From Heteronotia binoei (Eukaryota): a stretch of DNA of 64,000 bases. Positions 1-64,000 of the stretch are shown here, piece after piece. The notes beneath the pieces are model-generated. The model ran no database searches. It was not told the DNA's origin and worked only from the letters and a program-made list of their open reading frames with translations. The position numbers were made by a program, and so were the translations under genes. The DNA is taken from positions 7,812,001-7,876,000 of the forward strand of contig NC_083237.1 of assembly GCF_032191835.1 (NCBI RefSeq), read 5' to 3'. Every line of letters starts with the position of its first letter. Position 1 is the stretch's first letter.

Positions 1-32
1 CTCACCCTCCTCATTCTTCTGAACATCCTCTG
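1..32 (-). CDS. G1 last (zinc-finger) exon, 5' start only; continues beyond the window's left edge
   Basis: Acceptor ttttattccag|CAGAGGATGTTCAGAAGAATGAGGAG (phase 1, AEDVQKNEE..), paralogous to ZF-exon starts at 12878, 33157, 43566 and 59182. Confidence 0.75.
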
Positions 33-529
33 CTGGAATAAAAAGAGTGCTTCCATTAGCACCTGAGACGGCAAGTAAAATCCAAATACAAGTATGTGAT
101 TGCTGTAGGAAAGGACTGATGGCCCTTTGGCCTCATCCAGTGTGACTGATCATAACTAACACCCCCCCCCCCTCAGAATATCCAGTATTTAAGGATACAA
201 CAGCCCTGATGAACCACAGCTGAACTCCTCTCTAGATGGAGCTTCTGAGCCTCCAGATTCCAGGCCCTAGAAGACCTCCGTCCCTCCTCACCCTGTGGGC
301 TTTATAATTCTTCCAAACTAACAGCTGCTTAGAAGCAAAGGAGAAATTCTGAATGGCTGTTTCTTCCCAGTTCCCTTGACACAACTGGGAAGGACACCCA
401 CTCTCAGCCGGCTCATTTCGGAAGGAAATATGCTTTTGGAAGCCTCAAGAAACTCTCCAGCTTTCTTTGGATTCAAGACCATTGTTGGTCTCTCTGATTT
501 CTGGTTTCTTTTGCATGGGGTTGGGGGGT

Positions 530-886
530 GAACATAAGAAACACCATGTTGGATCAGGCCAATGGCCCATCCAGTCCAACACTCTGTGTCACACAGTGGC
601 CAAAAAACCACATGCCATCAGGAGGTCCATCAGTGAGGCCAGGACACTAGAAACCCTCCCACTGTTATCCCCCCCCCCCAAGCACCAAGAATACAGAGCA
701 TCACTTGCCCCAGACAGAGAGTTCCATCAATACCCTGTGGCTAATAGGCACCGATGGAAGTCTGCTCTATAAGTTTATCCAACCCCTCTTGAATCTGTCT
801 ATGAATGTAGCTATTAACACCTCCTGTGGCAGTGAATTCCATCTGTTAATCACCCTTTAGGCGAAGAAGTGCTTCCTTTTATCTGT
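530..886 (-). mobile_element. CR1-type LINE 3' fragment
   Basis: (TTCTTATG)-type tail; same family at 40410-40710 and 50626-51100. Confidence 0.75.
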
Positions 887-1358
887 GGGATTCATATGGA
901 GAAGGAAAGTTATCTAAGCAAAAATAACTGTTTTGAAAGGACAGAACCACAGTCAAGATCAAGGCCCGTAGTCTGAACCTGTACGAGGGACACGGATGCA
1001 GACAAGATCTCAGTCAGAGTGGATGTTTGGAATCCCATCCAGGGGGAAGGGTGTGTTGTAACGGTTGGCAGCAGAGAATCTAAGATCTGCCCGTTACAGA
1101 GTCTTTCTGATGGTCTCTCATCTCCACCTTTACTCAGGCCAGGACACCCTCTCTGGCTTGTGTGAGGGCCACAACACTGGCCTCCATTGCTCCTGGGCAA
1201 GCAGAAGGTCAGGTATCAAACTATGTATTGCTATTCAGTATTTTGATTCATGCCTCATCCCAATGGTGGCTATTCACACCTTAGGCATTACTTCCCTGTA
1301 CAGAGCTCCACAATGCAGAGAAGGAAAGAGTTGTGAAGTTTGAAGGGACGGTTCAGGT

Positions 1359-1551
1359 AAGGGTGCCAACCTCCCAGGGGGCCTAGGAGATGTCCCAGAA
1401 TTCGAACTGATCTTCAGGTGAAAGAGATCAATTCTCCTACAGGGCGGACTCCATGGCAGTATACTCCCTCTCAAACCTCTCCAGGCCTATGATTCTCCCC
1501 CCCGCATCCCCCAGTCTTCAGGTATATCCTGCCCCAGACTTGGCAGCTCTA
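1359..1551. mobile_element. MITE (AGGGT(T)GCCAAC-type termini); paralogous copy at 60718-60914
   Basis: Terminal inverted repeats ggtgccaac/ttggcagc; same junction context in G1 and G5. Confidence 0.6.
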
Positions 1552-1671
1552 GACAGCTGACCAGAAATGTTGCAAACAAGAAGCAGTGAGGAGGGAGGGG
1601 GTTAAAAAAATGCATTTGTAACTGAGCAGAGTCTTGGGAAGGCAAACTGACATTCCCAAGCTGGCAGTCCT

Positions 1672-2304
1672 TTTTTTTTTTTTTTTTAATGTCCAAAAAC
1701 TTTTTTATTGAATTTAGTAAACATACAAATAAAGCAATCAATGACTGTATCTGCAATCATTCTTTGTGTATAAGCATAGCATACCAGCAGAAAACAGAAT
1801 ATATATATATACACAAAATACAAACAAAACAACACATACATACATTCACACATACATACATACTTGGCAGCTGAATTAAAAAATAAGTACTCTGTCCATA
1901 TGTTAATTACATCAAATTAATAATGTCATAATATCTACCAGGAATACATGTACGCATCTGATCTACAGGACTAAAAGAAAATTTAAGAAATGGAAGCCAC
2001 TTGTACATCAGAGAATTGTTACCTTCTGAATTATTTATATTGCATAAACTATCTGCTATCTTGTCCATAGCATAGACCTCCCAGATTTTAGCATACCAGG
2101 CTTTAACTGGAGGAATATTGGGAGATTTCCAAAATTGGGCTAACACCATTTTAGCAGCAGCTAGTAAAAGGGATATCAGGGATTTATTGAGAGAAGTAAT
2201 AGAAATACCTTTCCAACAGTCAAGCAAAATGAGTTCCAATCTTAAGGGTAAACTATAGCCCGTGATATCCTTGATTTTTGCCACAATTACTGCCCAAAAC
2301 GACT
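1672..2304 (-). mobile_element. 5'-truncated L1/Tx1-like LINE with poly(A) tail and 12-bp TSD
   Basis: ORF2 C-terminal-like ORF 1907..2284; T-tract at 1671-1687; GCTGGCAGTCCT at 1660-1671 and 2305-2316. Confidence 0.8.
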
Positions 2305-4211: not shown

Positions 4212-4568
<357 letters not shown>

Positions 4569-4572
4569 TTAC

Positions 4573-4625
4573 CTGGGTTGGAGGTGCAGGAACCATTTCC
4601 ACACTCAAAATCATCTCTCCACTGC
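4573..4625 (-). CDS. G1 linker exon (GSGEMILSVEMVPAPPTQ)
   Basis: 53 bp, aacag acceptor and CAG|gtaagg donor; phase 1 to 0 joins exon 3 to KRAB-A; paralog at 17107-17177. Confidence 0.8.
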
Positions 4626-5676
4626 CTGTTAGTGAGACAAAGAAGGAAGGAAGGGTGTTTGCCTCGCCTTCCTATTCCATTTGCTTGTTTGTTCCTTCCT
4701 TCACTCACCCCCCCCCCCCTTCTCAGGGGTGTAAAACCTCACCTTGTGTATACTCAACGATTTTAAACACTCTTTGCAAGATTGTAGGAGTGGCAGAGGA
4801 GAAGGACCAGTTAGAAATGCTTCCAATGTATTTCATACTTCTGTGAGACTTGAAATGTGCCCTTTGAACTTTGGAATGCAAAAGCTTACAGCATCCCTGC
4901 TGGATCAGACTAAAAGTCCAGGCATGATGTTCTCCAGCCAGAAGAGACCTCCCATGAGGCCTTGAGCCTAGGCTGGTGGGAGAAAAAGAGGGGGCTGGAT
5001 ATGATGTCATGACATGTTACCATCCCATTTGGTCCAAAACAGAGATGTGACTGGAGAGCAACTGGAAACTGAATGAGTTTTCAGAGGCTCTTTTTTCATG
5101 CTAACGTCACAACTAGATTTTTCAGGAAGATGGAAATGTCAGTATGACATCACATCCCCTCCAAGCCCCTCCCAAAAACTCCTGGGGGTGCCAGTCCACA
5201 GCTTGCCAACCCTACGCCAGCATCCTATTTCCCACAATGGCTCATCAGAAGTCCCTTGACACATAGGCAGAGAAGCCAAATTTCCCCCATTATTATTGGT
5301 CCCTAGAAAGTGGTTTTCAGAGTTATGCTGCCCCAGAAGGTGGAGGCTCCATTTATTCACCAGGCTGAATAGCTCCACCCAGGTTTGCCTACCTTTTCTT
5401 TTTTGAGTTACCTGGAGTTCCTCTTAGGAAAGGAGGGTGAGATATTAACATTTTAGTTAATGTGAGGAACTGCTCTCCATGAATTTACCTAAACCTCTTT
5501 GAAAGACATCACAATTAATGAACATTGAGTTCATTCTTGTGTTGTGTGAAGGAATATTTATTTTATTGGATTTATATCCCGGCCTCCCCACTGAAGCAGT
5601 CTTTTCCTGACTTGAACTCTCCACCCATCACGTTCACAGTGTGCCGCAACTGCATCCAGCCACAATGAGACCTTAC

Positions 5677-5791
5677 CACAGGAGAGGGCATCTTGGGCAC
5701 GCTCCATGGCTTGTGCACTCTGCCCTTGCTCTAAGGAAGCTGCTTCTGCCTCAGGGAATGCATCTTCTGTCTTCACCGATGGTGCCCACGT
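5677..5791 (-). CDS. G1 exon 3 (TWAPSVKTEDAFPEAE...DALSC-G)
   Basis: 115 bp, tttcag acceptor and G|gtaagg donor; same length in all paralogs; open frame. Confidence 0.85.
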
Positions 5792-6067: not shown

Positions 6068-6490
6068 CTGTTCTGCCTGCCTCTTCTCCTCTGCCTGGCT
6101 CAGGAGGAAACCTTCGGCCAGGGCCACCGCCTGGGAACTGGTCTCTGGCCCACACCCTCTGACCCAGGACTGCATCTCCGGGGGCAGGATGACCAGGAAC
6201 TGCTCCAGGATCACCAGGTCCAAGATCTGCTTCTTTGTGCACCTCTCTGGCTTCAGCCAGTGGTTGCAAAGTGCATGGAGCTGGCTGCAAACTTCCCGGG
6301 GCCCATCAGCCATGTGGTACTGGAACAGCCGGAAGCGTTGGCAATGCAGATCTGAAGTTACGGTGTCCTTAGCCAGGATCTCTGGCACAGCTCTTTCCCA
6401 GAAATCAACATCACTCCCAGCTTGGAGGAGAAGGGGGCCTTTGCTTGCTGTCCTGCCAGTTCCAGGTCCTTCTGGGTGTTGTTCTTCCAT
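6068..6490 (-). CDS. G1 SCAN-domain exon (ZKSCAN-like SCAN-KRAB-C2H2 gene)
   Basis: [80 protein letters not shown] is a SCAN domain; strong Kozak GAGATGG; CAG|gtgagg donor; acceptor at 6521-6522. Confidence 0.93.
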
Positions 6491-11079: not shown

Positions 11080-11700
<621 letters not shown>

Positions 11701-12878
11701 TCAAAAGGTTTCTCCCGTGTGAGTTCTTTGATGTTTCCGAAGATGGCTACTCTGACTGAATCTCTTCCCACACTTTGAGCACTCAAAAGGTTTCTCTCCT
11801 GTGTGGGTTCTTTGATGCCGTTGAAGCTTGCTACTCTGACTGAATCTCTTCCCACAGTTTGAGCACTCAAAAGGTTTCTCCCCTGTGTGGGTTCTTTCAT
11901 GCAGCTGAAGCTTGCTACTCTGACTGAATCTCTTCCCACACTCTGAGCACTCAAAAGGTTTCTTCCCTGTGTGGGTGCTTTGGTGCTGTTGAAGATTGTT
12001 ACTCCGACTGAATCTCTTCCCACACTCTGAGCACTCAAAAGGTTTCTTCCCTGTGTGGGTGCTTTGGTGCTGTTGAAGATTGTTACTTCGACTGAATCTC
12101 TTTCCACACACTGAACATTCAAAAGGTTTCTCCCCTGTGTGGGTTCTTTGATGCCAGTGAAGACTGTCACGCAGACTGAATCTCTTTCCACATTCTGAGC
12201 ACTCAAAAGGTTTCTCCCCTGTGTGGGTACTCTGATGCTTCTGAAGATTACTACTCTGACTGAATCTCCTCCCGCACTCTGAGCACGCAAAAGGTTTCTC
12301 CCCTGTGTGAGTTCTTTGATGCCGTCGAAGAGTGCCACTTCGACTGAATTTCTTCCCACACTCTGAGCATTCAAAACGTTTCTCCCCTGGGTGGGTTCTT
12401 TGATGCTGGTGACAATTTTCACTGTGACTGAATCTCTTCTCAGACTCTAAGCATGCAAAGATTGTCTCCCTTGTATGTGTTCTTTGGTGCTGCAGAAGAT
12501 GGTCACGCCTAATACATTTTTTTCCACATTCCAAGCATTCAAATAATTTCTCTGCTCTGTGGATTTTTTGATGGTTTTCAAGAGTGCCCCTCAAACTGAA
12601 TTTCTGTCCCTGGAAATGGACATTACCTTGGGTTTGATCCGAAAAGTTCATTCTATGTTTTGAGCACTTGTCCATTTCCTTCCCCATGTGAATGACTTTT
12701 TGGAAATCCCTCCCATGGCAAGGAATAGTTTTATTTCTCTTCTTGACTGTTTGCCTGCCTTTCTGCCTCTTTAGCCTGCCTTGATTCCAGAAGCTTCCTT
12801 TCAGGTCTTCCTTTTTAACATTCTCTGGTGACTGCTGATGAACTTCCTCCCTTTTCTCATACTTCTGATCATCCTCTG
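11701..12878 (-). CDS. G2 zinc-finger exon: 9 canonical + 1 degenerate C2H2 fingers
   Basis: ORF 11701..12930 with CxxC..HxxxH and TGEKPFE linkers; phase-1 acceptor ttccag|CAGAGG matches the KRAB-A exon phase; ends TGETF*. Confidence 0.93.
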
Positions 12879-16774: not shown

Positions 16775-16901
16775 CTAGACAAAGAACCCTCTGATAGTTC
16801 TCCTGCATGACTTCCCTGTAGAGAGCTCTTTGGTCCGGATCCAGCAGTTCCCACTCTGCCTCGGTGAAATGTACAGCCACCTCCTCAAAGGAAAAGGGAC
16901 G
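16775..16901 (-). CDS. G2 KRAB-A exon ([42 protein letters not shown])
   Basis: 127 bp, tttcag acceptor and G|gtaagg donor; KRAB-A motif. Confidence 0.92.
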
Positions 16902-17106: not shown

Positions 17107-17177
17107 CTGGGTTGGAGATGCAGCAGACATTTCCGCACCTCTGAAAAGACGATGACTCAACTTAATCTCTCCACTGC
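17107..17177 (-). CDS. G2 linker exon (GSGEIKLSHRLFRGAEMSAASPTQ)
   Basis: 71 bp, canonical AG/GT, phase 1 to 0. Confidence 0.82.
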
Positions 17178-18190
17178 CTGTTAGTGAGACAAAGGAGGAA
17201 GGAAGGGTGTTTGCCTTCTGTTCCTATTCTATTTGCTTGTTTGTTCCCTGCTTCACACATCCCTTTCAAAGGGGTGTGAAACCTCACCCTGTGTACAAAC
17301 AATGATTTTAAACACTCCTTGCAAAATTGTGGAAGTGGCAGAAGAGAAGGACCAGGTATCCATAAGCCTTGGGTTTTAGAAATGCTGCAAATATATTTCA
17401 CGCTTCTGTGAGACTTGAAATGTGCCCTTTGAACTCTGGAATGCAAAAGATTGCGGCATCCCTGCTGGATCAGACCAAAAGTCCGTGCATGGTGTTCTCC
17501 AGCCAGAAGAGACCTCCCATGAGGCCTGGGCTGGTGGGAGAAAAAGAGGGGGCTGGATATGATGTCTTATGACATGTCACCATCCCATTTGGTCCAAAAC
17601 TGAGATGTGATTGGAGTACAACCGAAGACTGAATGAGTTTTCAGAGGATCTGTTGTCATGCTAACGCCGCAAGTAGGTTTGCAAGAGGATGGAAATCAGT
17701 ATGACATCACATCTGTTCCAAGCCCCTCCCAAAAGCTCCTGGGTGTGCCAGTCCACAGCCTGCCATCCCTATTCCAGCATCCTATTTACCACAATGGTTC
17801 ATCAGATGTCCCTTGACACATGGGCAGAGGAGCCAAATTTTCCCCATTATTAGAAAATGGTATTCAGGGCTCTGCTGCCCCAGAAAGTGGAGGCTCTATT
17901 TAGTCAGCAGGTTGAATAGCTCCACCCAGGTTTGTCTACCTTTTCTTTTTTTGAGCCACCTGGAGTTCCTCTTAGGGAAGGGAGGTGAGATATGAACATT
18001 TTCGTTAATGTGAGGAATTGCCCTCCATTAATTTATCTAAACTCCTTTGAAAGGCATCACAAGAAACGGACATTGAGTGCCATTAATTCCGTGTGGTGTG
18101 AAGAAATATTTAATTTTTTCCTGACTGGAATTCTCCACCCATCACATTCACAGTGTGCCCCAATTGCATCCAGGCACTATGAGACCTTAC

Positions 18191-18305
18191 CACAGGAGAG
18201 GGCATCCTGGGCACGCTCCATGGCTTGCGCACTCTGCCCTTGCTCTAAGGAAGCTCCTTCCGCCTCAGGGAATGAATCTTCTGTCTTCACGGATGGTCCC
18301 CACAT
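18191..18305 (-). CDS. G2 exon 3 (MWGPSVKTEDSFPEAEG...DALSC-G)
   Basis: 115 bp, canonical splice sites, open frame. Confidence 0.85.
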
Positions 18306-18578: not shown

Positions 18579-18992
18579 CTGTTCTGCCTGCCTCTTCTCC
18601 TCTGCCTGACTCAGGAGAAAACCTTCAGCCAGGGCCACCGCCTGGGAACTGGTCTCCGGCCCACATCCTCGGACCCAGCACTGCATCTCTGGGGGCAGGA
18701 TGGCCAGGAACTGCTCCAGGATCACCAGGTCCAGGATCTGCTTCTTGGTGTGCCTTTCTGGCTTCAGCCAGTAGCTGCAAAGTCCATGGAGCTGGCTGCA
18801 AACCTCCCGGGGCCCATCAGTCATGTGATACTGGAACAGCCGGAAGCGTCGGCAATGCACATCTGAGGTCATGGTGTCCTTAGCCAGGATCTCTGCCGCA
18901 GCTCTTTCAACACCACTCCCAGCTTGGAGGAGAAGGGGGCCTTTGCTTGCTGTCTTGCTAGTTCCAGGTCCTTCTGGATTCTGTTCTTCCAT
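18579..18992 (-). CDS. G2 SCAN exon; the spliced CDS 414+115+71+127+1178 = 1905 nt encodes a ~634-aa SCAN-KRAB-C2H2 protein
   Basis: SCAN motif in ORF 18546..19148; ATG at 18992; CAG|gtgagg donor; exon phases are compatible throughout. Confidence 0.93.
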
Positions 18993-27430: not shown

Positions 27431-27519
27431 TTCAACTTGAGGGTGTCAAGATTCAGGGAATGCAAGCATAGTCAGCTGGCAGATTCTGTGTCACATTTCT
27501 GTTTTGTCCCAGCTGAAGT

Positions 27520-41974: not shown

Positions 41975-42167
41975 GCTTCTCGATGTGTGGGTTCTTTGAT
42001 GCTTTTGAATATTGCCATGCTGAGTAAATCTCTTTCCACACTCTGAGCATTCATAAGGTTTCTCCCCTGTTTGGGTTCTCTGATGTACCTGAAGATGGCC
42101 ATTGTCACTGAATCTCTTTCCACAATCTGAGCACTTGAAAGATTCCCCTCTCTAACAGTCTGAACAC
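41975..42167 (-). pseudogene. Decayed finger repeats downstream of the G4 array stop
   Basis: Finger-like repeats with indels. Confidence 0.65.
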
Positions 42168-43566
42168 TTAAAAGGTTTCCCCCATGTGGATTCTTTGATG
42201 CTGCTGAAGCTTGTAATTGACACTGAATCTCTTCCCACACTGTGAGCACTCAAAAGGTTTCTCCCCTGTGTGGGTTCTTTGATGCTGCTGAAGATGGCCA
42301 TTCTGACTGAAACTCTTTCCACACTCTGAGCACTCAAATGGTTTCTCCCCTGTGTGGGTTCTTCGATGCACGTAAAGAATGCAAATACGACTAAACCTCT
42401 TTCCACATTCTAAGCACTCAAAAGGTTTTTCTCCTTTGTGGGTTCTTTGATGGTGTTGAAGATACCTACTGTCAAGGAATTTCTTCCCACACTCCAAGCA
42501 CTGAAAAGGTTTCTCCCCTGTGTGAGTTCTTTCATGCTGTTGGAGATTGCTACTTTCATTGAATCTCTTTCCACACTCTGAGCACTCAAAAGGTTTCTCC
42601 CCTGTGTGGGTTCTTTCATGTTGTTGAAGCTTGCTATTCTCATTGAATCTCTTCCCACACTCTGAGCACTCAAACGGTTTCTCCCCTGTATGGGTTCTGT
42701 GATGCACCTGAAGATTGCAAAGAAGACTAAATCTCTTTCCACAATCTGAGCACTCAAAAGGTTTTTCCCCTGTGTGGGTTCTTTGATGCTGTTGAAGATT
42801 GCTACTCTGACTGAATCTCTTTCCGCACTCTGAGCACTCAAAAGGTTTCTCCCCTGTGTGGGTTCTTTCATGCACTTGCAGCTTGCGGCTCTCACTGAAT
42901 CTCTTTCTGCACTCTGAGCACTCAAAAGGTTTCTCCCCTGTGTGGGTTCTTTGATGCACCCGAAGATTGCCAAGAAAACCAAATCTCTTTCCACATTCTG
43001 AGCACTCAAAAGGTTTCTCCCCCGTATGGGTTCTTTGATGCTGTTGAAGACTGCTACTTCGAGTGAATCTCTTTCCACACTCCGAGCACTCAAAAGGTTT
43101 CTCCCCTTTGTGGGTGCTTTGACGCTGCTGAAGTTGTCCACACTCTGAATATCCAAAAGTTTTCTCCCCCATGTGGGATCCTTGGTGATGTTGAAGATGA
43201 TCTTGCATACTAAATTTCTTTTTACCTTCCAAGCATTCAAAAGGTTTCTCCACTCTGTGGATTTTTTTATGGTTTTGAAGAGTGCCATTCAAACTGTCTT
43301 TCCATGCAAAGGGACATTATATTGGGCTTGATCTGAAAAGTTCACGTTATAGTACTTGTATGTTTCTTTCTCCATGTGAATGACTTTTCAGAAATCCCCC
43401 CCTTGGCAAGGAATGAGTTTTTCTGCCTTCTTGACCATTTGGCTGCCTTTCTGCTTCTTTAGACTGCCTTGATTCCAGAAGTTTCCTTTCATGCCTTCCT
43501 TTTTAACGTTATCTGGAGATTGTAGATGAAGTTCCTCACCTTCCTTATTCTCCTGATCATCCTCTG
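42168..43566 (-). pseudogene. G4 zinc-finger exon: premature TGA (43388-43390) and 4-nt deletion (43296/43297) ahead of an open 11-finger array
   Basis: GAT TTC TGA versus paralog GAT TTC CAA; GGAAAGACAG versus GGAAAGAAATTCAG; ORF 42168..43292 has no upstream in-frame ATG; SCAN, exon 3 and KRAB exons absent from the unit. Confidence 0.8.
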
Positions 43567-44669
43567 CTGGAATAAAAAGAGGGATCCCATCAGCACCTGG
43601 GAGGACAGGTAGAGTCGAAAGGCATCTAGGCAACTGCTGGAGGAAAGGACTGATGGCCCTTTGGCTTCATCTAAGGTGGCTGATCTTAACTAACATCCCC
43701 CCTCCCTCAGAATATCTAGCATTTAAGGATACAGCAGTTCCTCCTGAGCCACAGCTGAACTCTTGCCCAGATGTAGCTTCTGAGCCTCCAGATTCCAGGC
43801 TGCAGAAGACCACCACCCCCCTCCTCACCCAGTGGGCTTCATTATCCTACCAAACTCAGTTGCTTAGAAGCAAAGCAGAAATCCCCAATGGCTGTTTCTT
43901 GTCAGTTCTCTGAGGATACTCACTCTCAGCCAACTCATTTTGAAAGGAAATATGCTGTTGGGGGCCTTGAGAAACTCGCCAGTTTTTCTTTGGATGCAAG
44001 ACCGTTGTTGGACTTTGCCAAAGTCTTATAATTCTGGTTTCTTTTGCACAGGGTGGAGAAGGAAAGTTATCTAAGCAAAAGTAAGAACTGTTGTGGATGG
44101 ACAGAAGCATGATCCCCACTGGATCAGACCAAAAGTCCAGCCATGCATTTCTGTTGTTAGGTGGGCCTTCCAGGAGCCCTTGAGTCTGGGCTGGCGGGAG
44201 AAAAAGAAAGGATTGGAAATGACGTCGTATGACATCACACCATCTCCTTCAGCCCAAAACTGAGATTGGATTGAAGCACAACTGCCTTTTCAGAGGATCT
44301 GTCATCATGCTAACATCATAACTGGTTTTTTCAGCAAGTTGGAATATCAGCATGACATCACACCTACCCCAAGTCCCTCCCCAAAATCTCCTGGGGGGGG
44401 GGGTGCCAGTCCACAGCCTGCCATCTGTACTCCAGCTTCCTGTTTCCCACATCAGGAAACTAGATTCCCCTAGAAGAGAAGCCCAATCTTTCCATAATCA
44501 TTGGCTCCTAGAAGGGAATTTTCAGAGCCTCAGAAGGTGGAGGCTCCATTTATTCACCAGGCTGAATAGCTCTGTCCAGGTTTGTCTACTTTTCCTTTTT
44601 TGAGCCACCTGGAGTTTCTCTTAGAGAAGGAAGGTGAGATAGGAATATTTTAATTAATGTTAGGAATTG

Positions 44670-45320
44670 CCCTGTGGCAGTGAATTCCATGTGTTAATCA
44701 ATCTTTAGGTGAAAAAGTACTTCCTTTTCTGTTCTAACCTGACTGCTCAGCAATTTCATTAAGTGCCCACAAGTTTTTGTATTATGAGAAAGGGAGAAAA
44801 GTGCTTCTTTCTCTACCTTCTCTACCCCATGCATAATCTTGTAAACCACTTACCAAGTCAGTCTTTTCTCCAAGCTAAAGAACCCCAGGCGCTTTAACCT
44901 TTCTTGATAGGGAAAGTGTTCCAACCTTTTAATCATTCTAGTTGGCTTTTTCTGTACTTTTTCCAATGCTATAATATTCTTTTCGAGACGCGGTAACCAG
45001 AATTGTACACCAAATAAGGCCATACCATTGATTTATACAGGGGCATTATGATACTGGCTGATTTGTTTTCAGTTCCCTTCCTAATAATCCCCCGCATAGC
45101 ATGGGTCTTTTTTATTCCAGCAGAAAACTGTCTTGACATTTTCAGTGAGTTATCTACCATGACTCCAAAATCTCTCTCTTGGTCAGTCTCTGCCAGTTCA
45201 GACCCCATCAATGTGTCTTTATAATTAGGCTTTTTGGCCTCAAGGTGCATTACTTTGCACCTGATCACACCGAACCTCATTTGCCACATTGATGCCCACT
45301 TGCCCATTCTTGATAGATCC
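44670..45320 (-). mobile_element. CR1 internal fragment occupying the site of the missing G4 SCAN and exon 3
   Basis: ORF 44969..45307 WQMRFGVIRCKVMHL..ETDQERDFGVMVDNSLKMSRQ is CR1 RT C-terminus. Confidence 0.8.
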
Positions 45321-46629
45321 CTTTGGAGTGCAAAGTGGAGTTACATACCAAGGTATTTTTGATACGCCCAAGGGTCATTTAGTAGAAAAAGACATGTTGG
45401 AGCTCATTAGCACAATTCATTTGCATAACTAATTTGCATATGCCACACACCCCCTGACATCACCATAAGGTGTACTAAATTATATCAGCTCAGCATCTAC
45501 CTTAAAATGTTCCTTGAAGAGTAACTGCCATAATAAAACCTTACTTCCATCACACTTTTAACTTTCTCCTATGTGGCCACAGTGGCATGATGAAGATTTC
45601 CATCTGTCTGCTGTTTACGTTTTTTGTTATCTTCTCATTTTTTGGGGGGAAAACATGAGAACGTTTGTCAAATCTTAAGAGTTCAGCAAAATTTTCACAG
45701 GGGGTTTGAACAATGGAGCCCAGAAGCAAGTATTTTTCTTTGGTGGGGGTTGTTGGGTGGGGAGAAAGAAATCGCACAATAAAATTTAGAGGTTCCACAG
45801 CTCCACTCCTGTGAGCTCCTGCCCAAAATGAGGCTTGGATAAGCCTCTGTGGTTCTTTGGGAAAATGAAGTGTCTCTGTTTGGTTCTTTAAGGCTGTTGC
45901 AAGCTTAGCCTACCTTTTCTTTGGCCCAGTCTGTCCTAGGAGTTAATTCTTAAGGTAAAGTGGAGCTCCCAAAGGATAAAAGGAACTGGTGACCCCTTAA
46001 CCATTGTATGTATCTCTTCAATAGGTCTGAAGTGTTAGGCAAGAACTCTGTCCAAGTACCCAGCTTAGGGGGCAGGGGCAGGGAAGTAACCATGTGAAGA
46101 ACAAGCAGCTGAGATTTTGAGAGAAAAGCAGAGAAGCTTTGGCTGAGATTTGGTTCAAGGATTCTGATCTGAAGAAACGCTCCCTCTGGGCATCTGAGAT
46201 GGGGCAATGGACCTGCTACTGTGGGAATTCCTCATCAAACAAACAAGGCCAGCTGTTGCTTTTTTTTTTTTGTAGATTAAATTGACCAGCAGCAGAACAT
46301 TAGTTTTGTACAATTAACTTTCTTGTCCTGAAAGCCACTGACCGTGACCCCCCCCCCCCGCCTCCAACTATATAGTGGAGCAATACTGGTGCCTAAGCTA
46401 CCGACATCCAGCTGGCAGAGATCAGATCCCCTGGAGGAAATGGCCGCATTGGAGGGAGGACCCCACGGCCCCCTCCCCATCTCAAGTTCCCCTGCCCCGT
46501 CCCCCTACTTGGCCTTTTCCAGAATGCACCCTCTACCCTAAATATATAACCACCTGCAATCCGGGAGTTGGCAATCTGATCCCAGCCTTCCCTTCCCAGA
46601 TGCAAAAACGTATCTCCCTAACGCCTTAC

Positions 46630-46885
46630 TTCTAAGTAGACTTTCCCGGGATCCGGCTGCTGCTGATCCGAAGCTTTCCCTGTCCTCTTCCCCCAGTTCA
46701 GAAGCAAACCTGCCTTCCCGCCAGATAGGAAAATAAAAGAACCTTTCCTCTTTTCCAGGCTCGGCCTCTCTAGCAAGCGGCTCTGTCGCTTTAACCCTTT
46801 CGGTGCTGCAGACAGATGCAAAAACGCGTCAGTGTCCCCTCCGCAAGGAGCTCCAGCCACGCCTCAGCCAGCTCAGGAAAAGGAG
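46630..46885 (-). promoter_or_regulatory. G4 putative exon 1, proximal copy
   Basis: Paralogous to the other exon-1 regions; AGAA|gtaagg donor. Confidence 0.5.
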
Positions 46886-47163: not shown

Positions 47164-47426
47164 GCCTTACTTCTAAGTAGACTTTCCCGGGATCCGGCTG
47201 CTGCTGATCCGAAGCTTTCCCTGTCCTCTTCCCCCAGTTCAGAAGCAAACCTGCCTTTCCGCCAGACAGGAAAATAAAAGAACCTTTCCTCTTTTCCAGG
47301 CTCGGCCTCTCTAGCAAGCGGCTCTGTCGCTTTAACCCTTTCGGTGCTGCAGACAGATGCAAAAACGCGTCAGTGTCCCCTCCGCAAGGAGCTCCAGCCA
47401 CGCCTCAGCCAGCTCAGGAAAAGGAG
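47164..47426 (-). repeat. 263-bp near-identical duplicate of 46623-46885 (second G4 exon-1 copy with its donor)
   Basis: Direct comparison by eye shows 2 mismatches. Confidence 0.9.
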
Positions 47427-48175: not shown

Positions 48176-49661
48176 TGGATACTATCCTTCTGTTAGTACA
48201 GCCCAAAAATCACATTTGCCTTTTTAGCCACCACATTGCACTGTTGACTCATGCTCAGCGTATAGTCCACTAAGACCCCTAGATCCTTTTCACACAAACT
48301 ACTATCAAGACAAGTCTCCCCATGTGGCATGAGCGACAGAACCTCTGGCATAAATACACCAGGGAGCCGTATGGATGTTGATTTGAGTCCTCACCCACAG
48401 CAATGTTTCTCAAAGCCCAGAGAAAGAACATGGCCATTCCAACTCCATCGCCCCGATCCCTTTACTCTGCAGCTCACTTGGTAGAGGCAACCATAACACA
48501 ATGTCAAATTCTCCCTTCGGCATTGGGGTTTGGGTGGGAGGAACAACATCTGTTTGCCAGGTGAGAGAGGTACAGACCCCCAGGCAACACAACAGGGAGA
48601 AACACCAGGGCATAGTCACAGGAGGTGTGGGTTCAGGTTCCGCTAAGGGGGATGAAAGCAAGAACGCGAAGCTTGCCTTTTGGTGCCTAGGACACCCAGA
48701 AAGGGGTCCCGGCGAATGGAATCCCACATGAGGAGTCGTTAGTGCTGATTGGCTGGCCGGGATGTTAAGCATTTTGACCGGTGTCCCCCCACCCCCAGCT
48801 GCCATGTCTAGCAGGACACCAGTGAGACATTTAGTAGCCATCCATACGTGTTCAAGGAGTGGACTTAGGCTAGTTCCCAAAACAGGCTGGACTCTGGAAA
48901 ATGGTCTTTTTGTTAGGGTGAGCTGGAATGCAGGTCAAGAGGAAAGTATGATTGTTCTCTGGATGTTGCATTTACTCTTCTTCTTCACAGGGTAAGACAA
49001 ATCAAGGGTTTCTGTTTACCTGGGTTGGTTCCCCTTGGAAGGAGAAAGCCCTGGAGACATCTGGTGTCTTGTTATTATTTGCTTTAATGACAGATATACT
49101 GAGCCTATCTACTTTTCTCTCTCAGTCCCAGCTGTTTGTTCTTCACATGCTCATTTTCCTGCCCCTTCCCCTCAGCTGGGTACTTGGACAGAGCTCTTGC
49201 CTAACGCTTCAGGCCTACTGAAGGGATACTTACAATGGTTAAGGGGTCACCAATTCTTCTTGTCCTTTGGGGGCTCCACTTTATCTTAATTAACCCCTAG
49301 GACAGACTGGGCCAAAGTAAAGACAGCTAAACTTGCAACAGCATTAAAGAGCCAGAGACACTTCATTTCCCCAAAGAACCATAGAGGCATTTCTAAAAAA
49401 TCTTGGTACCTAATATAGCAAAATGACATTAAACTTAGTCGACAAACCTCAAGAAGTCCTTTTGTTCTGATCCACCAGGGCAATTCTTGTGGGTCTCCTG
49501 AGCATATGAAAGTTTCTGATGTTCAGTGGTGTATCTCCATTCTCTTCTGTTTTCCTTGTGACAAGTTCCTGTTTGTGTCTCTATCCTGCCCCTTTCTTCA
49601 CACCCAAATGAATCAAGGTGTCGTTTTGCAGTTAGAGGTGACTCAAGAGAAGGGGAAAGAG

Positions 49662-50086
49662 ATGGAAGAACAAGACACAGATGAACCCGGAACTGGCAAG
49701 ACACCAAGCAAAGGCCCCCTTCTCCTGCAAGCTGGAAGTGGTGTTGAATTCTGGGAAAGAGCTGTGCCAGAGATCCTGGCTAAGGACACCATAACCTCAG
49801 ATGTACATTGCCAAAGGTCCCAGCTGTTCCAGTACCACAAGGCTGATGGACCCCGGGAGGTTTGCAGCCAGCTCCGGCTTCAGCCAGCAACCACTGGCTG
49901 AAGCCGGAGAGGCACACCAAGAAGCAGATCCTGGACCTGGTGATCCTGGAGCAATTCCTGGCCATCCTGCCCCCGGAGATGCAGCGCTGGGTCAGAGAGT
50001 GTGGGCCAGAGACCAGTTCCCAGGCGGTGGCCCTGGCTGAAGGTTTCCTCTTGAGTCAGGCAGAGGAGAAGAGGCAGGCAGAACAG
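49662..50086 (+). pseudogene. Inverted SCAN exon with +2 frameshift
   Basis: [22 protein letters not shown], then a frame change, then [24 protein letters not shown]..; acceptor at 49630-49631; CAG|gtgact donor. Confidence 0.88.
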
Positions 50087-50270
50087 GTGACTGAAGTTCC
50101 TCCAGATCTGTCCATTCTAGCAACAGTATCCTATCTTATCCTAAAGTTTTCCTGACAAACATTTATCCCAAATCTGCTCATAGAAGGGTGCAGAGCTTGG
50201 GAGTGGGGCAGGATCCATTGCTTGGTCCATTCATTCCATCTCTTACTCCTCTCTTTTGCTGCTGTTTCAG

Positions 50271-50385
50271 ATGTGGGGACCATCTGTGAAGACAGCAGTT
50301 GCATTCCCTGAGGGGGAAGGAACTTTCTTAGAGCAAGGGCAGGGTGCAGAAGCCATGGAGCGTGCCCAAGATGCCCTATCCTATA
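50271..50385 (+). pseudogene. Inverted exon-3 copy (MWGPSVKTAVAFPEGEG...DALSY)
   Basis: 115 bp, tttcag acceptor and gtaaga donor. Confidence 0.8.
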
Positions 50386-50434
50386 GTAAGATCTCCCTGT
50401 TCCTGGATACAATTGAAGCACCCTGTGAATATGA

Positions 50435-50570
50435 CCCTGGAGCCGTTCCTGGCCATCCTGCCCCGGAGATGCAGCGCTGGGTCAGAGGGTGCGGGCCAGA
50501 AAACTGTTCCCTGATAGTAGCTGAAGGTTTCCTCTTGAGTCAGGCAGAGGAGACGAGGCAGGCAGGACAG
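50435..50570 (+). pseudogene. Second partial copy of the SCAN 3' half
   Basis: [36 protein letters not shown]; donor lost. Confidence 0.75.
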
Positions 50571-50625
50571 ATTTCCTCCAGTTGTGTCCAATTCAAGGCA
50601 AGAAAAAAAAAACATTTCTTCAAAA

Positions 50626-51100
50626 CGTAAGAACATAAGAGAAGCCATGTTGGATCAGGCCAATGGCCCATCCAGTCCAACACTGTGTGTCACACAGTGG
50701 CCAAAAAACCCCAAGTGCCATAAGGAAGTCCACCAGTGGGGCCAGGATGCTAGAAGCCCTCCCACTGTGCCCCCCCTCAAGCATCCAGAATACAGTGCAT
50801 CACTGCCCCACACAGAGAGTTCCAATGATAAGCTGTGGCTAATAGCCACTGATGGACCTCTGCTCCATATGCTTATCCAATCCTCTCTAGAAGCTGTCTG
50901 TGCTCGTAGCCGCCACCATGTCTTGTGGCAGTGAATTCCATGTGTTAATCGCCCTTTGGGTGAAGAAGTACTTCGTTTTATCCGTTCTAAGCCGACTGCT
51001 CAACGATTTCATTGAATGTCCACGAGTTCTCGTATTGTGAGAAAGGGAGAAAAGTACTTCTCTCTGTCTTCTGTATCCCATGCATAATCTTGTAAACCTC
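50626..51100 (-). mobile_element. CR1 3' fragment
   Basis: RTRGHSMKSLSSRLRTDKTKYFFTQRAINTWNSLP; AACATAAG tail. Confidence 0.82.
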
Positions 51101-57794: not shown

Positions 57795-59182
57795 TTACAA
57801 AGTTTCTCCCATGTGGGTTCTTTGATGATGTTGAAGATGGATACTCTGACTAAATCTCTTCCCACACTCTGAGCACTCAAAAGGTTTCTCCCCTGTATGG
57901 GTTCTTTGATGTTTTTGAAGATTGCCATTGGAACTGAACCTCTTCCCACACTGTGAGCACTCAAAAGGTTTCTCCCCTGTGTGGATTCTTCGATGCACCT
58001 GAAGATTGCCAAGAAGACTAAATCTTCTTCCACACTCTGAGCACTCAAAAGGTTTCTCCCCTGTGTGGGTTCTGTGATGATGCTTAAGCTTGCTACTGTC
58101 ACTGAATCTCTTCCCACACTCTGAGCACTGGAAAGGTTTCTCCGCTGTGTGAGTTCTTTGATGCTGTTGAAGATTGCAACTCTGACTGAATCTCTTCCCA
58201 CATTCTGAGCATTCAAAAGTTTTCTCCCCTGTGTGGGTTCTTTCGTGCAGTTGAAGCTTGCTACTGTCATTGAATCTCTTTCCACACACCAAGCACTCGA
58301 AAGGTTTCTCCCCTGTGTGGGTTCTTTGATGCACTTGAAGATTGCAAAGAAGACTAAATCTCTTCCCACACTCTGAGCACTCAAAAGGTTTCTCCCCTGT
58401 ATGGGTTCTTTGATGCACTTGAAGACTGCTACTCTGACTGAATCTCTTTCCACACACCAAACACTCAAAAGGTTTCTCTCCCGTGTGGGTTCTTTGATGC
58501 TCTCGAAGATTGCTACTGTAATTGAATTTTTTCCCACACTCCGAGCACTCAAAAGGTTTCTCTCCCGTGTGGGTTCTTTGATGCTGCTGAAGATTGCCAC
58601 TGTTACTGAATTTTTTCCCACACGCCAAGCACTCAAAAGGTTTCTCCCCTGTGTGGGTTCTTTGATGCTTTTGAAGATTGCTATTCCAACTGAATCTCTT
58701 CCCACACTCTGAGCACTCAAAAGGTTTCTCCCCTTTGTGGGTGCTTTGATGCTGCTGAAGTTGTCCAAGCTGATTAAATCTCTTTCCACACTCTGAGTCT
58801 CCAAAAGGTTTCCCCCCTGTGTGGGTTCTTTGGTGATGTAGAAGATGGCCATGCCTACTAAATTTCTTTTTACCTTCTAAGTATTCAAAAGGTTTTTCCA
58901 CTTTGTGAGGTTTTGGATGGTTTTCAAGAGTGTCATTCAAACTGAATTTCTTTCCATGGAAATGGACATTATATTGGGTTTGATCTGAAAAGTTCATTCC
59001 ATAGCACTCGTATGTTTCTTTCTCCATGTGAATGACTTTTTGGAAATCCCCCCCTTGGCTGCCTTTCTGACTCTTTGGTTTGCCTTGATGACAGAAGTTT
59101 CCTTTCACGTCTTCCTTTTGAACTTTATCTGGTGATTGCTGATGAAGTTCCTCACTCTCCTCACACTTCTGATCATCTTCTG
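57795..59182 (-). CDS. G5 zinc-finger exon: 11 canonical C2H2 fingers plus degenerate N-terminal fingers
   Basis: ORF 57795..59108 extends in frame to the acceptor ttccag|CAGAAG at 59182; ends MGETL*. Confidence 0.88.
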
Positions 59183-59190: not shown

Positions 59191-59725
59191 ATAATAATAA
59201 TATTTTATTTGTATCCCACCCTCCCCGCCGAAGCAGGTTCAGCGTGGCTCAAATGGCATAACATAATATGCTACATTTCAACAGTTAAAACAAGATGTAA
59301 ACAAAACAATTTAGAAATCATAAATACATATTATTATCTTACATTAAAGCCAACTAATTAAAACCAACAGATTAGTTTGGTGCTAAAATCTCGGTGTTGT
59401 CCATCTTACAGTTATTCCGTGGTTACGGCTTTCTTCTACAGTAAATGACATAATAGGCAAAAGCCAGCTGGAAGAGGGTAGTCTTGCAGGCCCTGTGGAA
59501 CTGGGTAAGGCTCCGCAAGGCCTGCACCTCCTCTGGCAGCTGGTTCCACCAGTGGGTAGCTGTAAACGAGAAGGCCCTTTCCCTGGTGACTTTCAATTTG
59601 GCCTCCCTCGGCCTGGGGACTGCCAAAAGATTTTGAGAGCCAGATCGCAGTACCCTCTGAGGAATGTATGGGAAGAAAGGGTCCCTAAGGTAGGCAGGTC
59701 CTCGGCCATATAGGGCTTTAAAGGT
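59191..59725 (-). mobile_element. 5'-truncated L2 LINE inserted 8 nt upstream of the G5 ZF-exon start
   Basis: ORF 59423..59752 closely matches the 54041 family; (ATT)n tail; TSD GAATA at 59186-59190 and 59726-59730. Confidence 0.88.
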
Positions 59726-61539
59726 GAATAGAAAGAGGAATCCCGTCAGCAACTGGGAGGGCAGGTAGAATCCAAAGGCATCAATGTGACTGCTGTAGGA
59801 AAGGAGTGATGGCCCTTTGGCCTCATCCAGTACGGCTGACCTTAACTATCACTCCCCCTCCTCAGAATATCCAGTATTTAAGGATACAACAGCCCCTCAT
59901 GAGCCACAGCTGAACTCTTGCCCAGATGTCGCTCCTGAGCCTCCAGATTCCAGGCCCTAGAAGACCCTCCCATCCCCCCTCACCCAGTGGGCTTTATAAT
60001 TCTACCAAACTAACAGCTGCTTAGAAGTGAAGGAGAAATCACCAATGGCTGTTTTTTGCCAGTTCCCTTGACATAACCTTGAAGATAACCACTCTCAGCC
60101 AGCTTATTTTGGAAGGAAACATGCTTTTGGGATCCTCTTGAGAAACTCTCCAGCTTTTCTTTGGAGGCAAGGCCACTGTCGGTCTCCACCAAAGTCTCTC
60201 TTATTTTTCTGGTTTTTTTTGGGGGGGGGGAGAAGGGGAGAGGGGAATTCTTATATGGAGAAGGTAAGATATCCAAGCAAAAGTATAAACGTGTAAAAGG
60301 ATTAATGGTCAAGATCAAATCCCACAATCTGAACTAGTATAAGGGTGATGGATCCTAACCAGATCACAGTCAGAGTGGATGTTTGGAATCCCATCCAGGG
60401 GGGAAGGGTGTGTTGTAAAGGTTGGGCAACAGAGATTTTAAGATCTGGCCACTTAAAGAGACTTTCTGGCCATCTCTCATCCCCGCCCTCTCTGGCTTGG
60501 GAGACGGCCACAACCCTGGCCTGGGCAAGTAGAAGGACAGGTGTGAAAACAGTGTATTGATGTTCAGTATTTTGATTCATGCCTTATCCCAACGTTGGCA
60601 ATGCACACCTTTGGCATGGCTTCCCTGTACAGAGGTCTTTTCCCCAGAGGGGACTTAGAGCAAGGAGCTGCAAAGCAGAGAAGAGCGAGCTGTGAGGCTT
60701 GAAGAGGAGGTTCAGGTAAGGGTGCCAACCTCCCAGGGGGCCTTGGAGATCTCCCAGAATTCAAGCTGATCTTCAGCTGAGAGAGATCAGTTCCCCTGCA
60801 GAAAATGGCTGCTTTGCCCGGTGGACTCCATGGCAGGATACTCTAACCCTTTGCATGCTTATGACCCACCCCCCAAATCTTCAGGTATTTCCTGCCCAGA
60901 AGCTGGCAGCTCTAGGTGACTTGCCAAAAATGTGGCAGGCAAAAAGTAGTGGGGGAGGGTTTACAGAAAATGCATTTGGGGTTGAGGTGGGTCCTTGGGG
61001 CTCAGAGGACTTCCCAAGGTGGACGTCCTCCATGAGGTCGTCTGCTAGAAGGAACTGCCTACTGGTGAATCGACTGCGTGGGACAGGATGATCCTAAAAT
61101 GAATACTGGTCTTCCATCAGAACCACACCCTGTCCCACGGCACCACAGTGCTGTGGCTTTGAAAGTGAGTTTTATTTATTTTTTAGTCCTTTTAAATCCC
61201 ATCCTTCCTCCAAGGAACTGAGGGGGATGTGTGCAGGTCTCAGCTACTCCATGTTGCCCTTCCAGCAACCCTTTGAGGTAGGCCAGGCTAAGAGGGTGGC
61301 TTGCCTACTCTCATCCCACAAGCTTCATAGCACAGTCAGGTGTTCAAATGTGGCTCTCCCAGCTCCTCTCCCCTGCCACTGACCACGATACTACATGGCC
61401 TTCCCCAGCTCCACAGGTGCCACCAGAGAAGAATCACCTGAAGCGCTCAGTGGTTCAGCAAATGTAACCAACACAACTGATTTCTGTCAAGCTGATAAGG
61501 AAAGGCTCAGAAGAGAAAGGATCAAAACTGGGCAGAAGA

Positions 61540-62130
61540 GAAGCCTGTGCGCATGTCGGGGTTCAAAAAGCTGGCTTTCTATTGGATCATGAGAACCAAT
61601 CAAAATGGAGCTTGGAGCTGACTGGTTGCCCTGGAGTTTCCAATGGAGGATGAGAGATGTGCCTGCCACAAGACTGGAGGAGGCAAATGTTATCCTACTC
61701 TTCAAAAAGAGGAAGGATGACCCAGGGAACTACAGGCCAGTCAGCCTGACCTCTGTCCCAGGGAGGATACTGAAGCAGATTTTGAAGAGATCAGTCTGTG
61801 AGCAGACAACTTGGTGATAGTCGACATTGCCTACCTGGATTTCAGTAAAGCTTCTGACAGGTTTCCCATGATATTTTGATGGTTAAACTAAAGAACTGTG
61901 GACTGAACTCAGTTGGATTGGGAACTGGCTAGCGAGCCACACTGTAAGAGTAGCTGTCAATGGCATTTCATCTTTTTGGAGTGAAGTATACACTGGGGTG
62001 CCACAATGTCGAACATTTTAATAAATGATCTGGGGGTGGGGGGACCTCGTTAAATTTGTGGATGTCTCATTGAAGAAATTGGGAGGAGTTGTGAACACAC
62101 TGGAAGATAGAGGTAGATAAAGGCAAAATT
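61540..62130 (+). mobile_element. Decayed CR1, orthologous to 14150-14777 in G2
   Basis: RLEEANVILLFKKRKDDPGNYRPVSLTSVPGRIL; the flank 61400-61540 also matches 14060-14200. Confidence 0.8.
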
Positions 62131-63170
62131 CAGTGAGATCTGTACTGGAAAGGTCCAAGTTCTGACCTCCTCCCCCAAAGAAGGTGACCCCAGGAAAGTG
62201 CTAACTGGTAGCCATGTCCCCAGAAAGCACTTTCCTTGGGAGGTGATCTTGGACCTAAATCCCCACTAAACGAGGAGGGCAGGCAGAGAAAACTGAACTG
62301 GAGATCTTGTAGAACTTTGGTGTCTCCAGCATGCCGGGGTGTGTGTGTGTGAAGTATTCTACCACCTACTGAACCACACAAGCTGAACCAGTTTGTAAGG
62401 CAGCTAAAAATTTGAAATAGTCTACGGTTCTCCAGTGGGGAATAACATAAACCACAAATCGAACTGCCCCCCCCCCCGCCAGGTGGATCAGTCCAAAAGT
62501 CCAGGCATGCCATTCTCCTTCCAGCTGGGCCCTCCCCGGAGATCGAGTCTGGGCTGGAAGGAGAAAAAAGAAGGGATTGGAAATGACGTCTCACTATCCC
62601 AAAACCGAGATGTGATTGAAGCACGACTGCGTTTTTAGAGAATGTGTTGTCATGCTAATATTACAATTTGTTTTTTCAGCAAGATGGAATGTCAGCATGC
62701 CCCAAGGTCCTCTCAAAACCTCCTGGGGGTAGCAGTCCACAGCCTGCCATTCCTGTTCCAGCATCCTGTTTCCCACATTGGGTAACCAAATCCCCCTAGA
62801 AAAGAAGCCAAATCTTTCCATTATTATTGACCCCTAGAAAGGAATTTTCAGCTCTGCTGCCCTGGAAGGTGGAGGCACCATTTATTAACTAGGCTGAATA
62901 GCTCTGCCCAGGTTTGTCTACCATGTCTTTTTTTGAGCCATCTTGAGTTCCTCTTAGGGAAGGAAGATGAAATAGGAATATTTTAATTAATGTGAGGAAT
63001 TGCCCTCCATGAATTTATCTAAACCCCTTTGAAAGGCATCACAATTAGTGGACGGAGTGCCAAAAATTAATTCCTGTGTTGTGTGAAGGAATAGTTTTTC
63101 TTGCCTTGAACTCTCTAACCACAGCGTTTATAGTGTGCCTCAATCGCATCCCGGCACAATGAGACCTTAC

Positions 63171-63285
63171 CACAGGAGAGGGCACCTTGGGCATGATCCA
63201 TGGTTTGAGCACTCTGCCCTTGCTCTAAGAAAGTTCCTTCCACTTGAGGGAATGCATCTTCTGTCTTCATGGATGGCTCCCACAT
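63171..63285 (-). CDS. G5 exon 3 (MWEPSMKTEDAFPQVEG...GALSC-G)
   Basis: 115 bp, canonical sites, open frame. Confidence 0.82.
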
Positions 63286-63559
63286 CTAAAACAGCAGTGA
63301 GGGAGAGGGGTAAGAGATGGAATAAACAGACCAATCAATGGATCCTGCCCCACTCCCAGACTATTCAGTTACCTATGAGCAGACCTGGCAAATTATCTGG
63401 AGGGATAAGAAATTCTATAGTAGAAGAGGCTGCTGAAGGGGGCTATTCTATCTCCCATTTGAATGATTAACACTTGGGGAAAAGTTCTGTCAGGAAAAAG
63501 TTTAGGAAAAGATCAGATCTTGTTGCTTGAATTGAACATGCCTGGAAAATGCCCCTCAC

Positions 63560-63982
63560 CTGTTTTGCCTGCCTCTTCCCCTCTGCCTGACTCAGAAAGA
63601 AACCTTCAGCCAGGGCCACTGCCTGGGAACTGGTCTCTGGCCCACACCCTTGGACCCAGCACTGCATCTCCGGGGGCAGGATGGCCAGGAACTGCTCCAG
63701 GATCACCAGATCCAGGATCTGCTCTTTGGTATGCCTCTCTGGCTTCAGCCAGTGGTTGCAAAGTCCATGGAGCTGGCTGCAAACTTCCCGGGGCCCATCA
63801 GCCATGTGGTACTGGAACAGCCGGAACCTTTGGCAATGTATATCTGAGGTCACAATGTCCTTAGCCAGGATCTCTGGAACGGCTCTTTCTTGGAATTCAA
63901 CACCATTCCCAGCTTGCAGGAGAAGGGGGCCTTTGCTTGCTGCCTTGCCAGTTCCAGGTCCTTCTGGGTCCTGTTCTTCCAT
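63560..63982 (-). CDS. G5 SCAN exon; spliced CDS 423+115+1388 = 1926 nt encodes a ~641-aa KRAB-less SCAN-C2H2 protein
   Basis: ORF 63467..63982 with SCAN motif; acceptor tttcacag at 63990-63991; CAG|gtgagg donor. Confidence 0.9.
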
Positions 63983-64000
63983 CTCCCTTCTGTGAAACGA

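Follow-up and report, generated by a model that had tools for sequence, protein, structure and literature searches.

The clusters of KRAB zinc finger (ZNF) genes found in mammals are shaped by tandem duplication, by positive selection on DNA-contact residues set within a conserved finger framework, by the gain and loss of fingers and the loss of effector exons, and by the formation of pseudogenes. In Anolis, 89 SCAN-ZNF and 240 SCAN-KRAB-ZNF gene models have been counted (Liu et al. 2014, PMC3971581; Emerson and Thomas 2011, cited there), and in human cells, ZNF24, a SCAN protein that has no KRAB, is found complexed with SCAN-KRAB proteins (PMC6745500). Here we describe a cluster of five related units, G1 to G5, in a stretch of 64,000 nucleotides (nt) of the genome of the gecko Heteronotia binoei (GCA_032191835.1, CM063339.1:7,812,001-7,876,000 for NCBI gene look-ups), hereafter called the window, which contains no N runs; positions are numbered within it. 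The zinc finger (ZF) arrays, SCAN boxes, and KRAB boxes of the units are carried by the minus strand, apart from the 5' copy belonging to G4, which is inverted and lies on the plus strand. We suggest, with a probability of about 0.8, that the locus represents a tandem cluster of SCAN-KRAB-C2H2 ZNF genes of the squamate type, specific to its lineage and under ordinary birth-and-death evolution.

According to this reading, the ancestral unit would have comprised five coding exons: a SCAN exon bearing the ATG and ending in phase 0, a 115-nt exon 3 (phase 0 to 1), a short linker exon running from phase 1 to phase 0, a KRAB-A exon of 127 nt running from phase 0 to phase 1, and a single large ZF exon with a phase-1 start. 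This plan persists in G1 and G2; in the line leading to G3, G4, and G5, the linker and KRAB-A exons would have been taken out by genomic deletions within the intron between exon 3 and the ZF exon. Because these two exons sum to a multiple of three and are flanked on either side by phase-1 introns, exon 3 can be spliced to the ZF exon in frame, and the preservation of frame is a passive by-product of the family exon plan. The exons, their phases, the deletions, and the lesions are read directly from the sequence, whereas the polarity of the change (loss rather than gain) and the current activity of the KRAB-less copies are inferences.

A scan of the window with Pfam profiles, at the curated cut-offs of 27 bits for SCAN (PF02023) and 20.4 bits for KRAB (PF01352), located SCAN in four minus-strand exons, at 6490-6068 (G1), 18992-18579 (G2), 35225-34802 (G3), and 63982-63560 (G5), each scoring 121 to 125 bits and spanning positions 2 to 88 or 89 of the 90 in the profile. 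KRAB was found only at 4352-4226 (G1) and 16901-16775 (G2), and C2H2 arrays were present in G2, G3, G4, and G5. The SCAN domain lies in an open frame from the start codon in G1, G2, and G5 and in G3 only via an internal ATG at 35095. Exon 3 measures 115 nt and runs from phase 0 to phase 1 in every copy; the acceptor of the ZF exon, ttattccag/CAGARGATG, is retained in five of five units, and all of the ZF exons begin in phase 1. An earlier note on this sequence had described five units sharing one exon plan but differing in domains, with exon 3 ending and the ZF exon starting in phase 1, and it proved largely right, being confirmed in part: exon mapping bears out the phases in all units, and the linker and KRAB-A exons, measured between AG and GT sites, total the 180 nt (53 + 127) and 198 nt (71 + 127) claimed for G1 and G2, respectively. 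Its domain classes stand for SCAN, for KRAB, and for the C2H2 arrays of G2 to G5, whereas the fingers assigned to G1 lie beyond the window, and the claim of a shared plan had overlooked a frameshift at the SCAN exon of G3, lesions in G4, and the inverted SCAN exon and exon 3 of that unit.

The complete plan can be read from G2, whose five GT-AG exons match the 634-amino-acid product P0001 ("zinc finger protein 436-like [Heteronotia binoei]") with zero differences. On the minus strand, these are the SCAN coding exon, identified by Pfam (18579-18992; 414 nt from the ATG, ending in phase 0), exon 3 (18191-18305; 115 nt, ending in phase 1), the linker exon (17107-17177; 71 nt), the KRAB-A exon (16775-16901; 127 nt, ending in phase 1, 73.9 bits against Pfam KRAB), and the ZF exon (11701-12878; 1178 nt, with a phase-1 start and nine intact fingers followed by a stop), so that the coding-exon phases run 0-0, 0-1, 1-0, 0-1, and 1-0, and KRAB-A lies upstream of the C2H2 array within one frame. 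Beyond the stop codons of G2 (11217-11699), G3 (31546-31608), and G4 (41987-42049), the minus strand carries decayed fingers interrupted by stops and frameshifts; these arrays were formerly longer.

G1, also on the minus strand, has an intact SCAN coding exon (6068-6490; 423 nt from the ATG, Pfam E=4e-36, with its GT donor and boundaries set by homology to G2), exon 3 (5677-5791; 115 nt, phase 0 to 1), a linker exon with AG and GT sites placed by homology (4573-4625; 53 nt, phase 1 to 0), and a KRAB-A exon (4226-4352; 127 nt, phase 0 to 1, Pfam E=5e-21, 74.6 bits); alignment of the acceptor region identifies the first 32 nt of its ZF exon at 1-32, the finger array lying beyond the start of the window. 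NCBI divides G1 into two genes, one encoding a 180-amino-acid SCAN-only product and the other a 678-amino-acid KRAB-ZF product. The former corresponds to window positions 6490-4968, the reconstructed product ending in ALSCA* by way of an alternative terminal coding piece (CC plus TAG, 4968-4972, minus strand) behind the acceptor ctcccaccag, and the latter begins at an ATG at 4596 inside the linker exon and extends beyond the window. Exon 3 and the linker exon nevertheless read through in frame, and the split may reflect either true alternative transcript ends or an annotation error. The acceptor of the alternative exon (TTTTCTCC..CCAG) is conserved in five of five units, which by their alignment carry it on the minus strand at 4940-4990, 17530-17560, 33690-33720, 44180-44200, and 62560-62580, so that SCAN-only transcripts might be possible from every unit; it sits some 70 to 120 nt upstream of the start of the three deletions described below.

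The KRAB-less state of G3, G4, and G5 stems from genomic deletions rather than from exon skipping. Both exons are physically absent from these units, as the earlier note had held: neither blastn nor relaxed tblastn found a linker or KRAB exon in any of them, the best match being at chance level (E=0.08, at a relic in G5), and none combines a PF01352 domain with its C2H2 array. In collinear maps of the introns, the stretch downstream of exon 3 and about 500 nt upstream of the ZF exon are common to all units; between them, G3 is without the equivalent of G1 4853-378 and G4 is without the equivalent of G1 4893-949. G5 is without only the equivalent of G2 17466-15720, which holds the linker and KRAB exons, and has kept the remainder of the intron; its deletion junction (62154-62484, minus strand) is occupied by about 330 nt of filler that has no significant likeness to the missing stretch of G1 and G2 (z of about 1.7). 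In an unrooted tree, the shared intron segment splits G1 and G2 from G3, G4, and G5 with 100/100 support.

The direction of change is indicated by the wider family and by a remnant within the cluster. Among the 18 H. binoei relatives returned by our searches, 14 possess SCAN and KRAB in the same order of exon 3, linker, KRAB, and "AEDDQ," and the unlinked paralogues read "...ALSC / G.GE...Q /.PFSFEEV... / AEDDQ..." across these junctions. One unlinked paralogue, P0023 (CM063329.1), passes directly from exon 3 to the ZF exon ("ALAC/AGDDQ"), and no KRAB was found by tblastn in its 7.8-kb intron; other squamate SCAN-only ZNFs were rejected as comparators, since they belong to more distant subfamilies that do not share the junction between exon 3 and the ZF exon. 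Within the cluster, a decayed second KRAB-A exon and its flank can be traced on the minus strand in the last intron of G1 (894-1618) and in G5 (60253-60978) and is absent from G2. Its recognizable "ALYREVM" part lies at 1285-1308 in G1, with about 350 nt of flank resembling that of the live KRAB exon, and the counterpart in G5 lies at 60614-60640 with its downstream flank; the relic region 1277-1486 of G1 gives no Pfam match. The presence of this relic in both G1 and G5 suggests that the KRAB exon had long ago been tandemly duplicated within the ancestral intron. Since 14 of 18 relatives are of the SCAN-KRAB type and G5 holds a KRAB relic in common with G1, loss is favored over gain, and SCAN-KRAB-ZF was probably the ancestral order. 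Judged from the sequences compared, the phase-symmetric pair of linker and KRAB exons is a trait of the whole family and no device specific to this locus.

Two of the three KRAB-less copies, G3 and G4, are damaged. G5 is the sole KRAB-less unit that reads through all of its exons (423 + 115 + 1388 nt, 641 codons), comprising on the minus strand an intact SCAN coding exon of 423 nt (63560-63982), a 115-nt exon 3 (63171-63285), and a ZF exon of 1388 nt (57795-59182) that starts in phase 1, is open for 461 codons, and encodes 11 fingers. An interspersed repeat of 531 nt with an A/T-rich tail and a TATTC target duplication (59195-59725, minus strand) has been inserted 3 nt upstream of the start of the ZF exon, so that the old branch-point region (CTGAC) is now about 550 nt from the acceptor; a tRNA-derived head was searched for in the insertion, and none was found. 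The ZF exon of G5 is contained in no database protein of 240 to 765 amino acids, the best H. binoei matches being 53 to 67% identical. Following the loss of KRAB, the fates of the copies diverged: G5 kept an intact 641-codon SCAN-ZF reading while receiving a repeat at its last acceptor, G3 acquired a frameshift ahead of SCAN, and G4 lost its 5' exons by rearrangement and suffered breakage of its ZF exon upstream of the array.

In G3, the SCAN exon (34802-35225, minus strand; 424 nt) contains one extra A, in a run at about 35150, which shifts the frame by +1 before SCAN is reached, so that the reading from the usual ATG stops after 28 codons; exon 3 (34503-34617; 115 nt) and a ZF exon open for 456 codons and encoding 11 fingers (31785-33157) follow on the same strand. 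The NCBI model, P0204 (395 amino acids), starts at the internal ATG at 35095, exits the SCAN exon at an internal donor at 34949 and is consequently without the C-terminal half of SCAN, joins exon 3 straight to the ZF exon (34503/33157), and leaves the latter at 32255 for a last coding exon of 23 nt (28451-28473, minus strand). The GT at 34949 (CTG/GTGATCC) is invariant across the SCAN copies, and its use as a donor halves SCAN while keeping the frame. The final coding exon of P0204 (28473-28451) is closely followed downstream by an isolated minus-strand fragment of five intact fingers (27510-28117) that has no linker, acceptor, or flanking homology.

The ZF exon of G4 (42168-43566, minus strand) has kept its acceptor, encounters a TGA after 58 codons (at about 43390), and has a 4-nt deletion before the array (at about 43300); the NCBI product is a single-exon, ZF-only protein of 346 amino acids (43208-42168) starting at an ATG at 43208. 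No SCAN exon or exon 3 lies upstream in the same orientation, both surviving inverted on the plus strand: a SCAN exon (49662-50086) that matches only positions 31 to 89 of the Pfam profile and has a 2-nt insertion shifting the frame by +2 within SCAN, a 115-nt exon 3 (50271-50385), and, beside the latter, a second SCAN 3' half (50432-50597). NCBI calls no gene at the inverted copy (49662-50385), which forms part of a plus-strand block (49102-50597) running from the upstream region through the SCAN exon, the intron, and exon 3 to the second SCAN 3' half. A simple inversion in place does not fit, as a 166-nt piece of upstream sequence occurs in direct orientation (45837-46002) as well as inverted. 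Also upstream of G4 are two direct copies of a 263-nt sequence (46623-46885 and 47164-47426, plus strand), 541 nt apart and 99.2% identical, which are far more alike than all other repeat pairs in the window. A single interspersed repeat recurs at 530-886, 40414-40713, 44671-44847, and 50624-51098, its copies being situated in the last intron of G1, at the truncated 5' edge of the G4 intron, and beside the inverted SCAN exon, and this repeat may be linked to the rearrangement of G4.

The coding sequences bear the marks of selection. Pairwise ratios of nonsynonymous to synonymous substitution rates (dN/dS) of the SCAN exons, from which positions 63666-63702 were excluded, as they were from the tree, range from 0.27 to 0.46 across all pairs, with dS at 0.18 to 0.26, and the exons are 85 to 90% identical between units. 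When the ZF exon of G5 was compared with those of G3, G4, and G2, the finger framework gave dN/dS values of 0.20 to 0.31 and the DNA-contact positions (helix positions -1, 2, 3, and 6) gave values of 1.6 to 2.1, the latter based on few synonymous changes (about 3); contact positions above 1 within a constrained framework are the pattern expected of polydactyl C2H2 ZNFs under diversifying selection. Strings of contact residues are 39 to 50% identical between units, G3 and G5 having three consecutive identical fingers in common. High contact and low framework ratios appear here as the usual signature of evolving ZNF paralogues, and the pattern indicates that the copies functioned as DNA-binding proteins over much of their past and that their targets have probably diverged.

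Several observations weigh against the birth-and-death account in its plainest form. The three deletion junctions differ: G3 retains about 50 nt that are absent from G4 and G5, and G5 retains about 2 kb that are absent from G3. One deletion is therefore insufficient, and at least two events or a secondary remodelling must be invoked; because G3 and G5 each keep sequence that the other has lost, neither state could have arisen from the other through deletion only. The intron tree is unrooted, the SCAN-exon tree is an unresolved star, gene conversion may blur the history of the cluster, and an error in the assembly could account for the frameshift of one base in G3. In view of the constraint on SCAN and on the finger framework in G3, G4, and G5, "decay" may also be too strong a term for G5 and for the array of G4. 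Most simply, KRAB would have been lost early, in the common ancestor of G3, G4, and G5, and the unconstrained junction would then have been remodelled, with two or three separate deletions as a possible alternative.

The earlier note had proposed that KRAB-less paralogs might heterodimerize with their KRAB-bearing neighbors or compete against them. The cluster would then be a working repressor/anti-repressor set in which KRAB-less, SCAN-only, and ZF-only products modulate the SCAN-KRAB-ZF neighbors, either through SCAN heterodimerization or through the occupation of DNA sites without a repressor domain, with G5 and perhaps G3 acting as SCAN-ZF proteins. We regard this as unlikely, although it is not without attractions. 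The SCAN dN/dS of about 0.3 and the 85 to 90% identity extend to all units, including G5, making cross-dimerization plausible; G5 reads intact; the NCBI annotation of G1 includes a product with SCAN alone and that of G4 a product with fingers alone; and the human complexes of SCAN-KRAB proteins with ZNF24 (PMC6745500) render the anti-repressor idea reasonable by analogy. Against it, the annotated product of G3 has half a SCAN domain and that of G4 has none, so that only G5 could supply a full SCAN-ZF partner, yet the acceptor context of G5 is disturbed and its ZF exon is missing from the proteins of 240 to 765 amino acids in the database. The contact residues also differ widely, and at 39 to 50% identity competition for the same sites would be improbable.

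The repressive half of such a set is equally in doubt, since TRIM28 (KAP1)-dependent repression by the KRAB domains of G1 and G2 cannot be assumed. The KRAB-A domain of G2 can be aligned, with no gap, to the KRAB of ZNF93 in its complex with KAP1 (7z36_D), and of the KAP1-contact residues named for ZNF93, V9, F13, E17, L21, Y29, V32, M33, E35, and N36 are kept in the alignment; D8 is replaced by E in both G1 and G2, I11 is replaced by V, and the leucine of the essential MLE motif has become glutamine in G2 (MQE) and arginine in G1 (MRE). No KRAB-B box is present. The lizard KRAB consensus has lost the central leucine of MLE, so that KAP1 binding is not to be taken for granted (Liu et al., PMC3971581), and human SCAN-KRAB proteins frequently fail to bind KAP1 (PMC6745500). 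The functional inference receives little support here. A bolder version strikes us as quite improbable: G2 and G1, G5, the 180-amino-acid product of G1, and the product of G4 would form a self-contained set in which the forms without KRAB and those with SCAN alone use SCAN heterodimers to titrate or redirect the KRAB-bearing members, and the repeated in-frame loss of KRAB would have been selected for and not just tolerated.

It is similarly hard to credit KRAB as a facultative cassette, whereby the linker and KRAB-A exons of G1 and G2 would be skipped together in some transcripts and their genomic loss would have fixed an isoform that already existed. The sums of 180 and 198 nt between flanking phase-1 introns would permit this, and G1 is already annotated with alternative transcript ends, but P0001 is the sole G2 product found, protein searches made exon by exon returned no KRAB-skipped isoform, and the skipping of two exons is rarer than that of one. 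Either exon skipped alone would shift the frame, because 71, 53, and 127 are not multiples of three. The earlier note had claimed that deleting or skipping the two exons keeps the frame; removal of both is indeed frame-neutral, P0204 using precisely this junction (34503/33157), and the absence recorded here is due to genomic deletion rather than to skipping. As for the converse history, in which the KRAB-less state was locally ancestral and the ancestor of G1 and G2 acquired its linker and KRAB exons from another family member through recombination or conversion, it is highly improbable. In its favor, the tree has no root and the three "deletions" have 5' edges that lie no more than about 50 nt apart, much like an insertion boundary. 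Against it, the roughly 2 kb of intron that G5 keeps beyond the missing stretch is collinear with G1 and G2 and includes the relic shared with G1, so that sequence derived from KRAB was already present in the ancestral intron; the genome's other relatives are mostly SCAN-KRAB-ZF genes with the same exon order; and G3 shares about 50 nt more with G1 and G2 than do G4 and G5.

The exon phases make the loss of an effector domain harmless to the frame, deletions remove that domain, and most of the resulting products decay; should the KRAB-less copies prove to be active partners, the cluster would offer a compact natural system in which to observe how effector-domain loss rewires a young transcription factor family. 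The data are also of value for annotation: G1 has been split in two, the model of G3 contains half a SCAN domain, and the ZF exon of G5 appears in no product of 240 to 765 amino acids that we found.

Comparison with known systems places these findings in context. SCAN-only proteins and isoforms of the SCAND1 type resemble the 180-amino-acid product of G1, which consists of the SCAN exon, exon 3, and one codon of the alternative terminal exon, with the difference that the G1 product is a gene prediction. Mammalian genes of the ZKSCAN and ZSCAN/ZNF24 types show the same domain orders, and their products form SCAN complexes of KRAB-bearing and KRAB-less members (PMC6745500); in mammalian proteins with SCAN, KRAB is frequently of a variant type that fails to bind KAP1. 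There is no orthology between these genes and those of the gecko, as lizard SCAN-ZNFs expanded independently (PMC3971581), and in contrast to the mammalian pair, the SCAN-KRAB-ZF and SCAN-ZF forms of the gecko cluster are recent neighbors (dS of about 0.2 to 0.35). The expansions in Anolis carolinensis are alike in being big, lineage-specific, clustered families of polydactyl ZNFs with an N-terminal SCAN, with or without KRAB, that are without mammalian orthologues, and their KRAB-A domains are without the central leucine of MLE, as are those of G1 and G2. The work on that species dealt in genome-wide counts of gene models (PMC3971581) rather than in the exon phases and junctions of one cluster, whereas the gecko locus displays intermediate and decayed states side by side. 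In a fashion similar to the birth and death of mammalian KRAB-ZNF genes, the gecko cluster exhibits the same pattern of selection and the same cluster dynamics, and it differs from them in its SCAN exon and in the extra 115-nt and linker exons that are specific to the squamate subfamily. The locus is a clear, well-resolved squamate example of known ZNF cluster dynamics.

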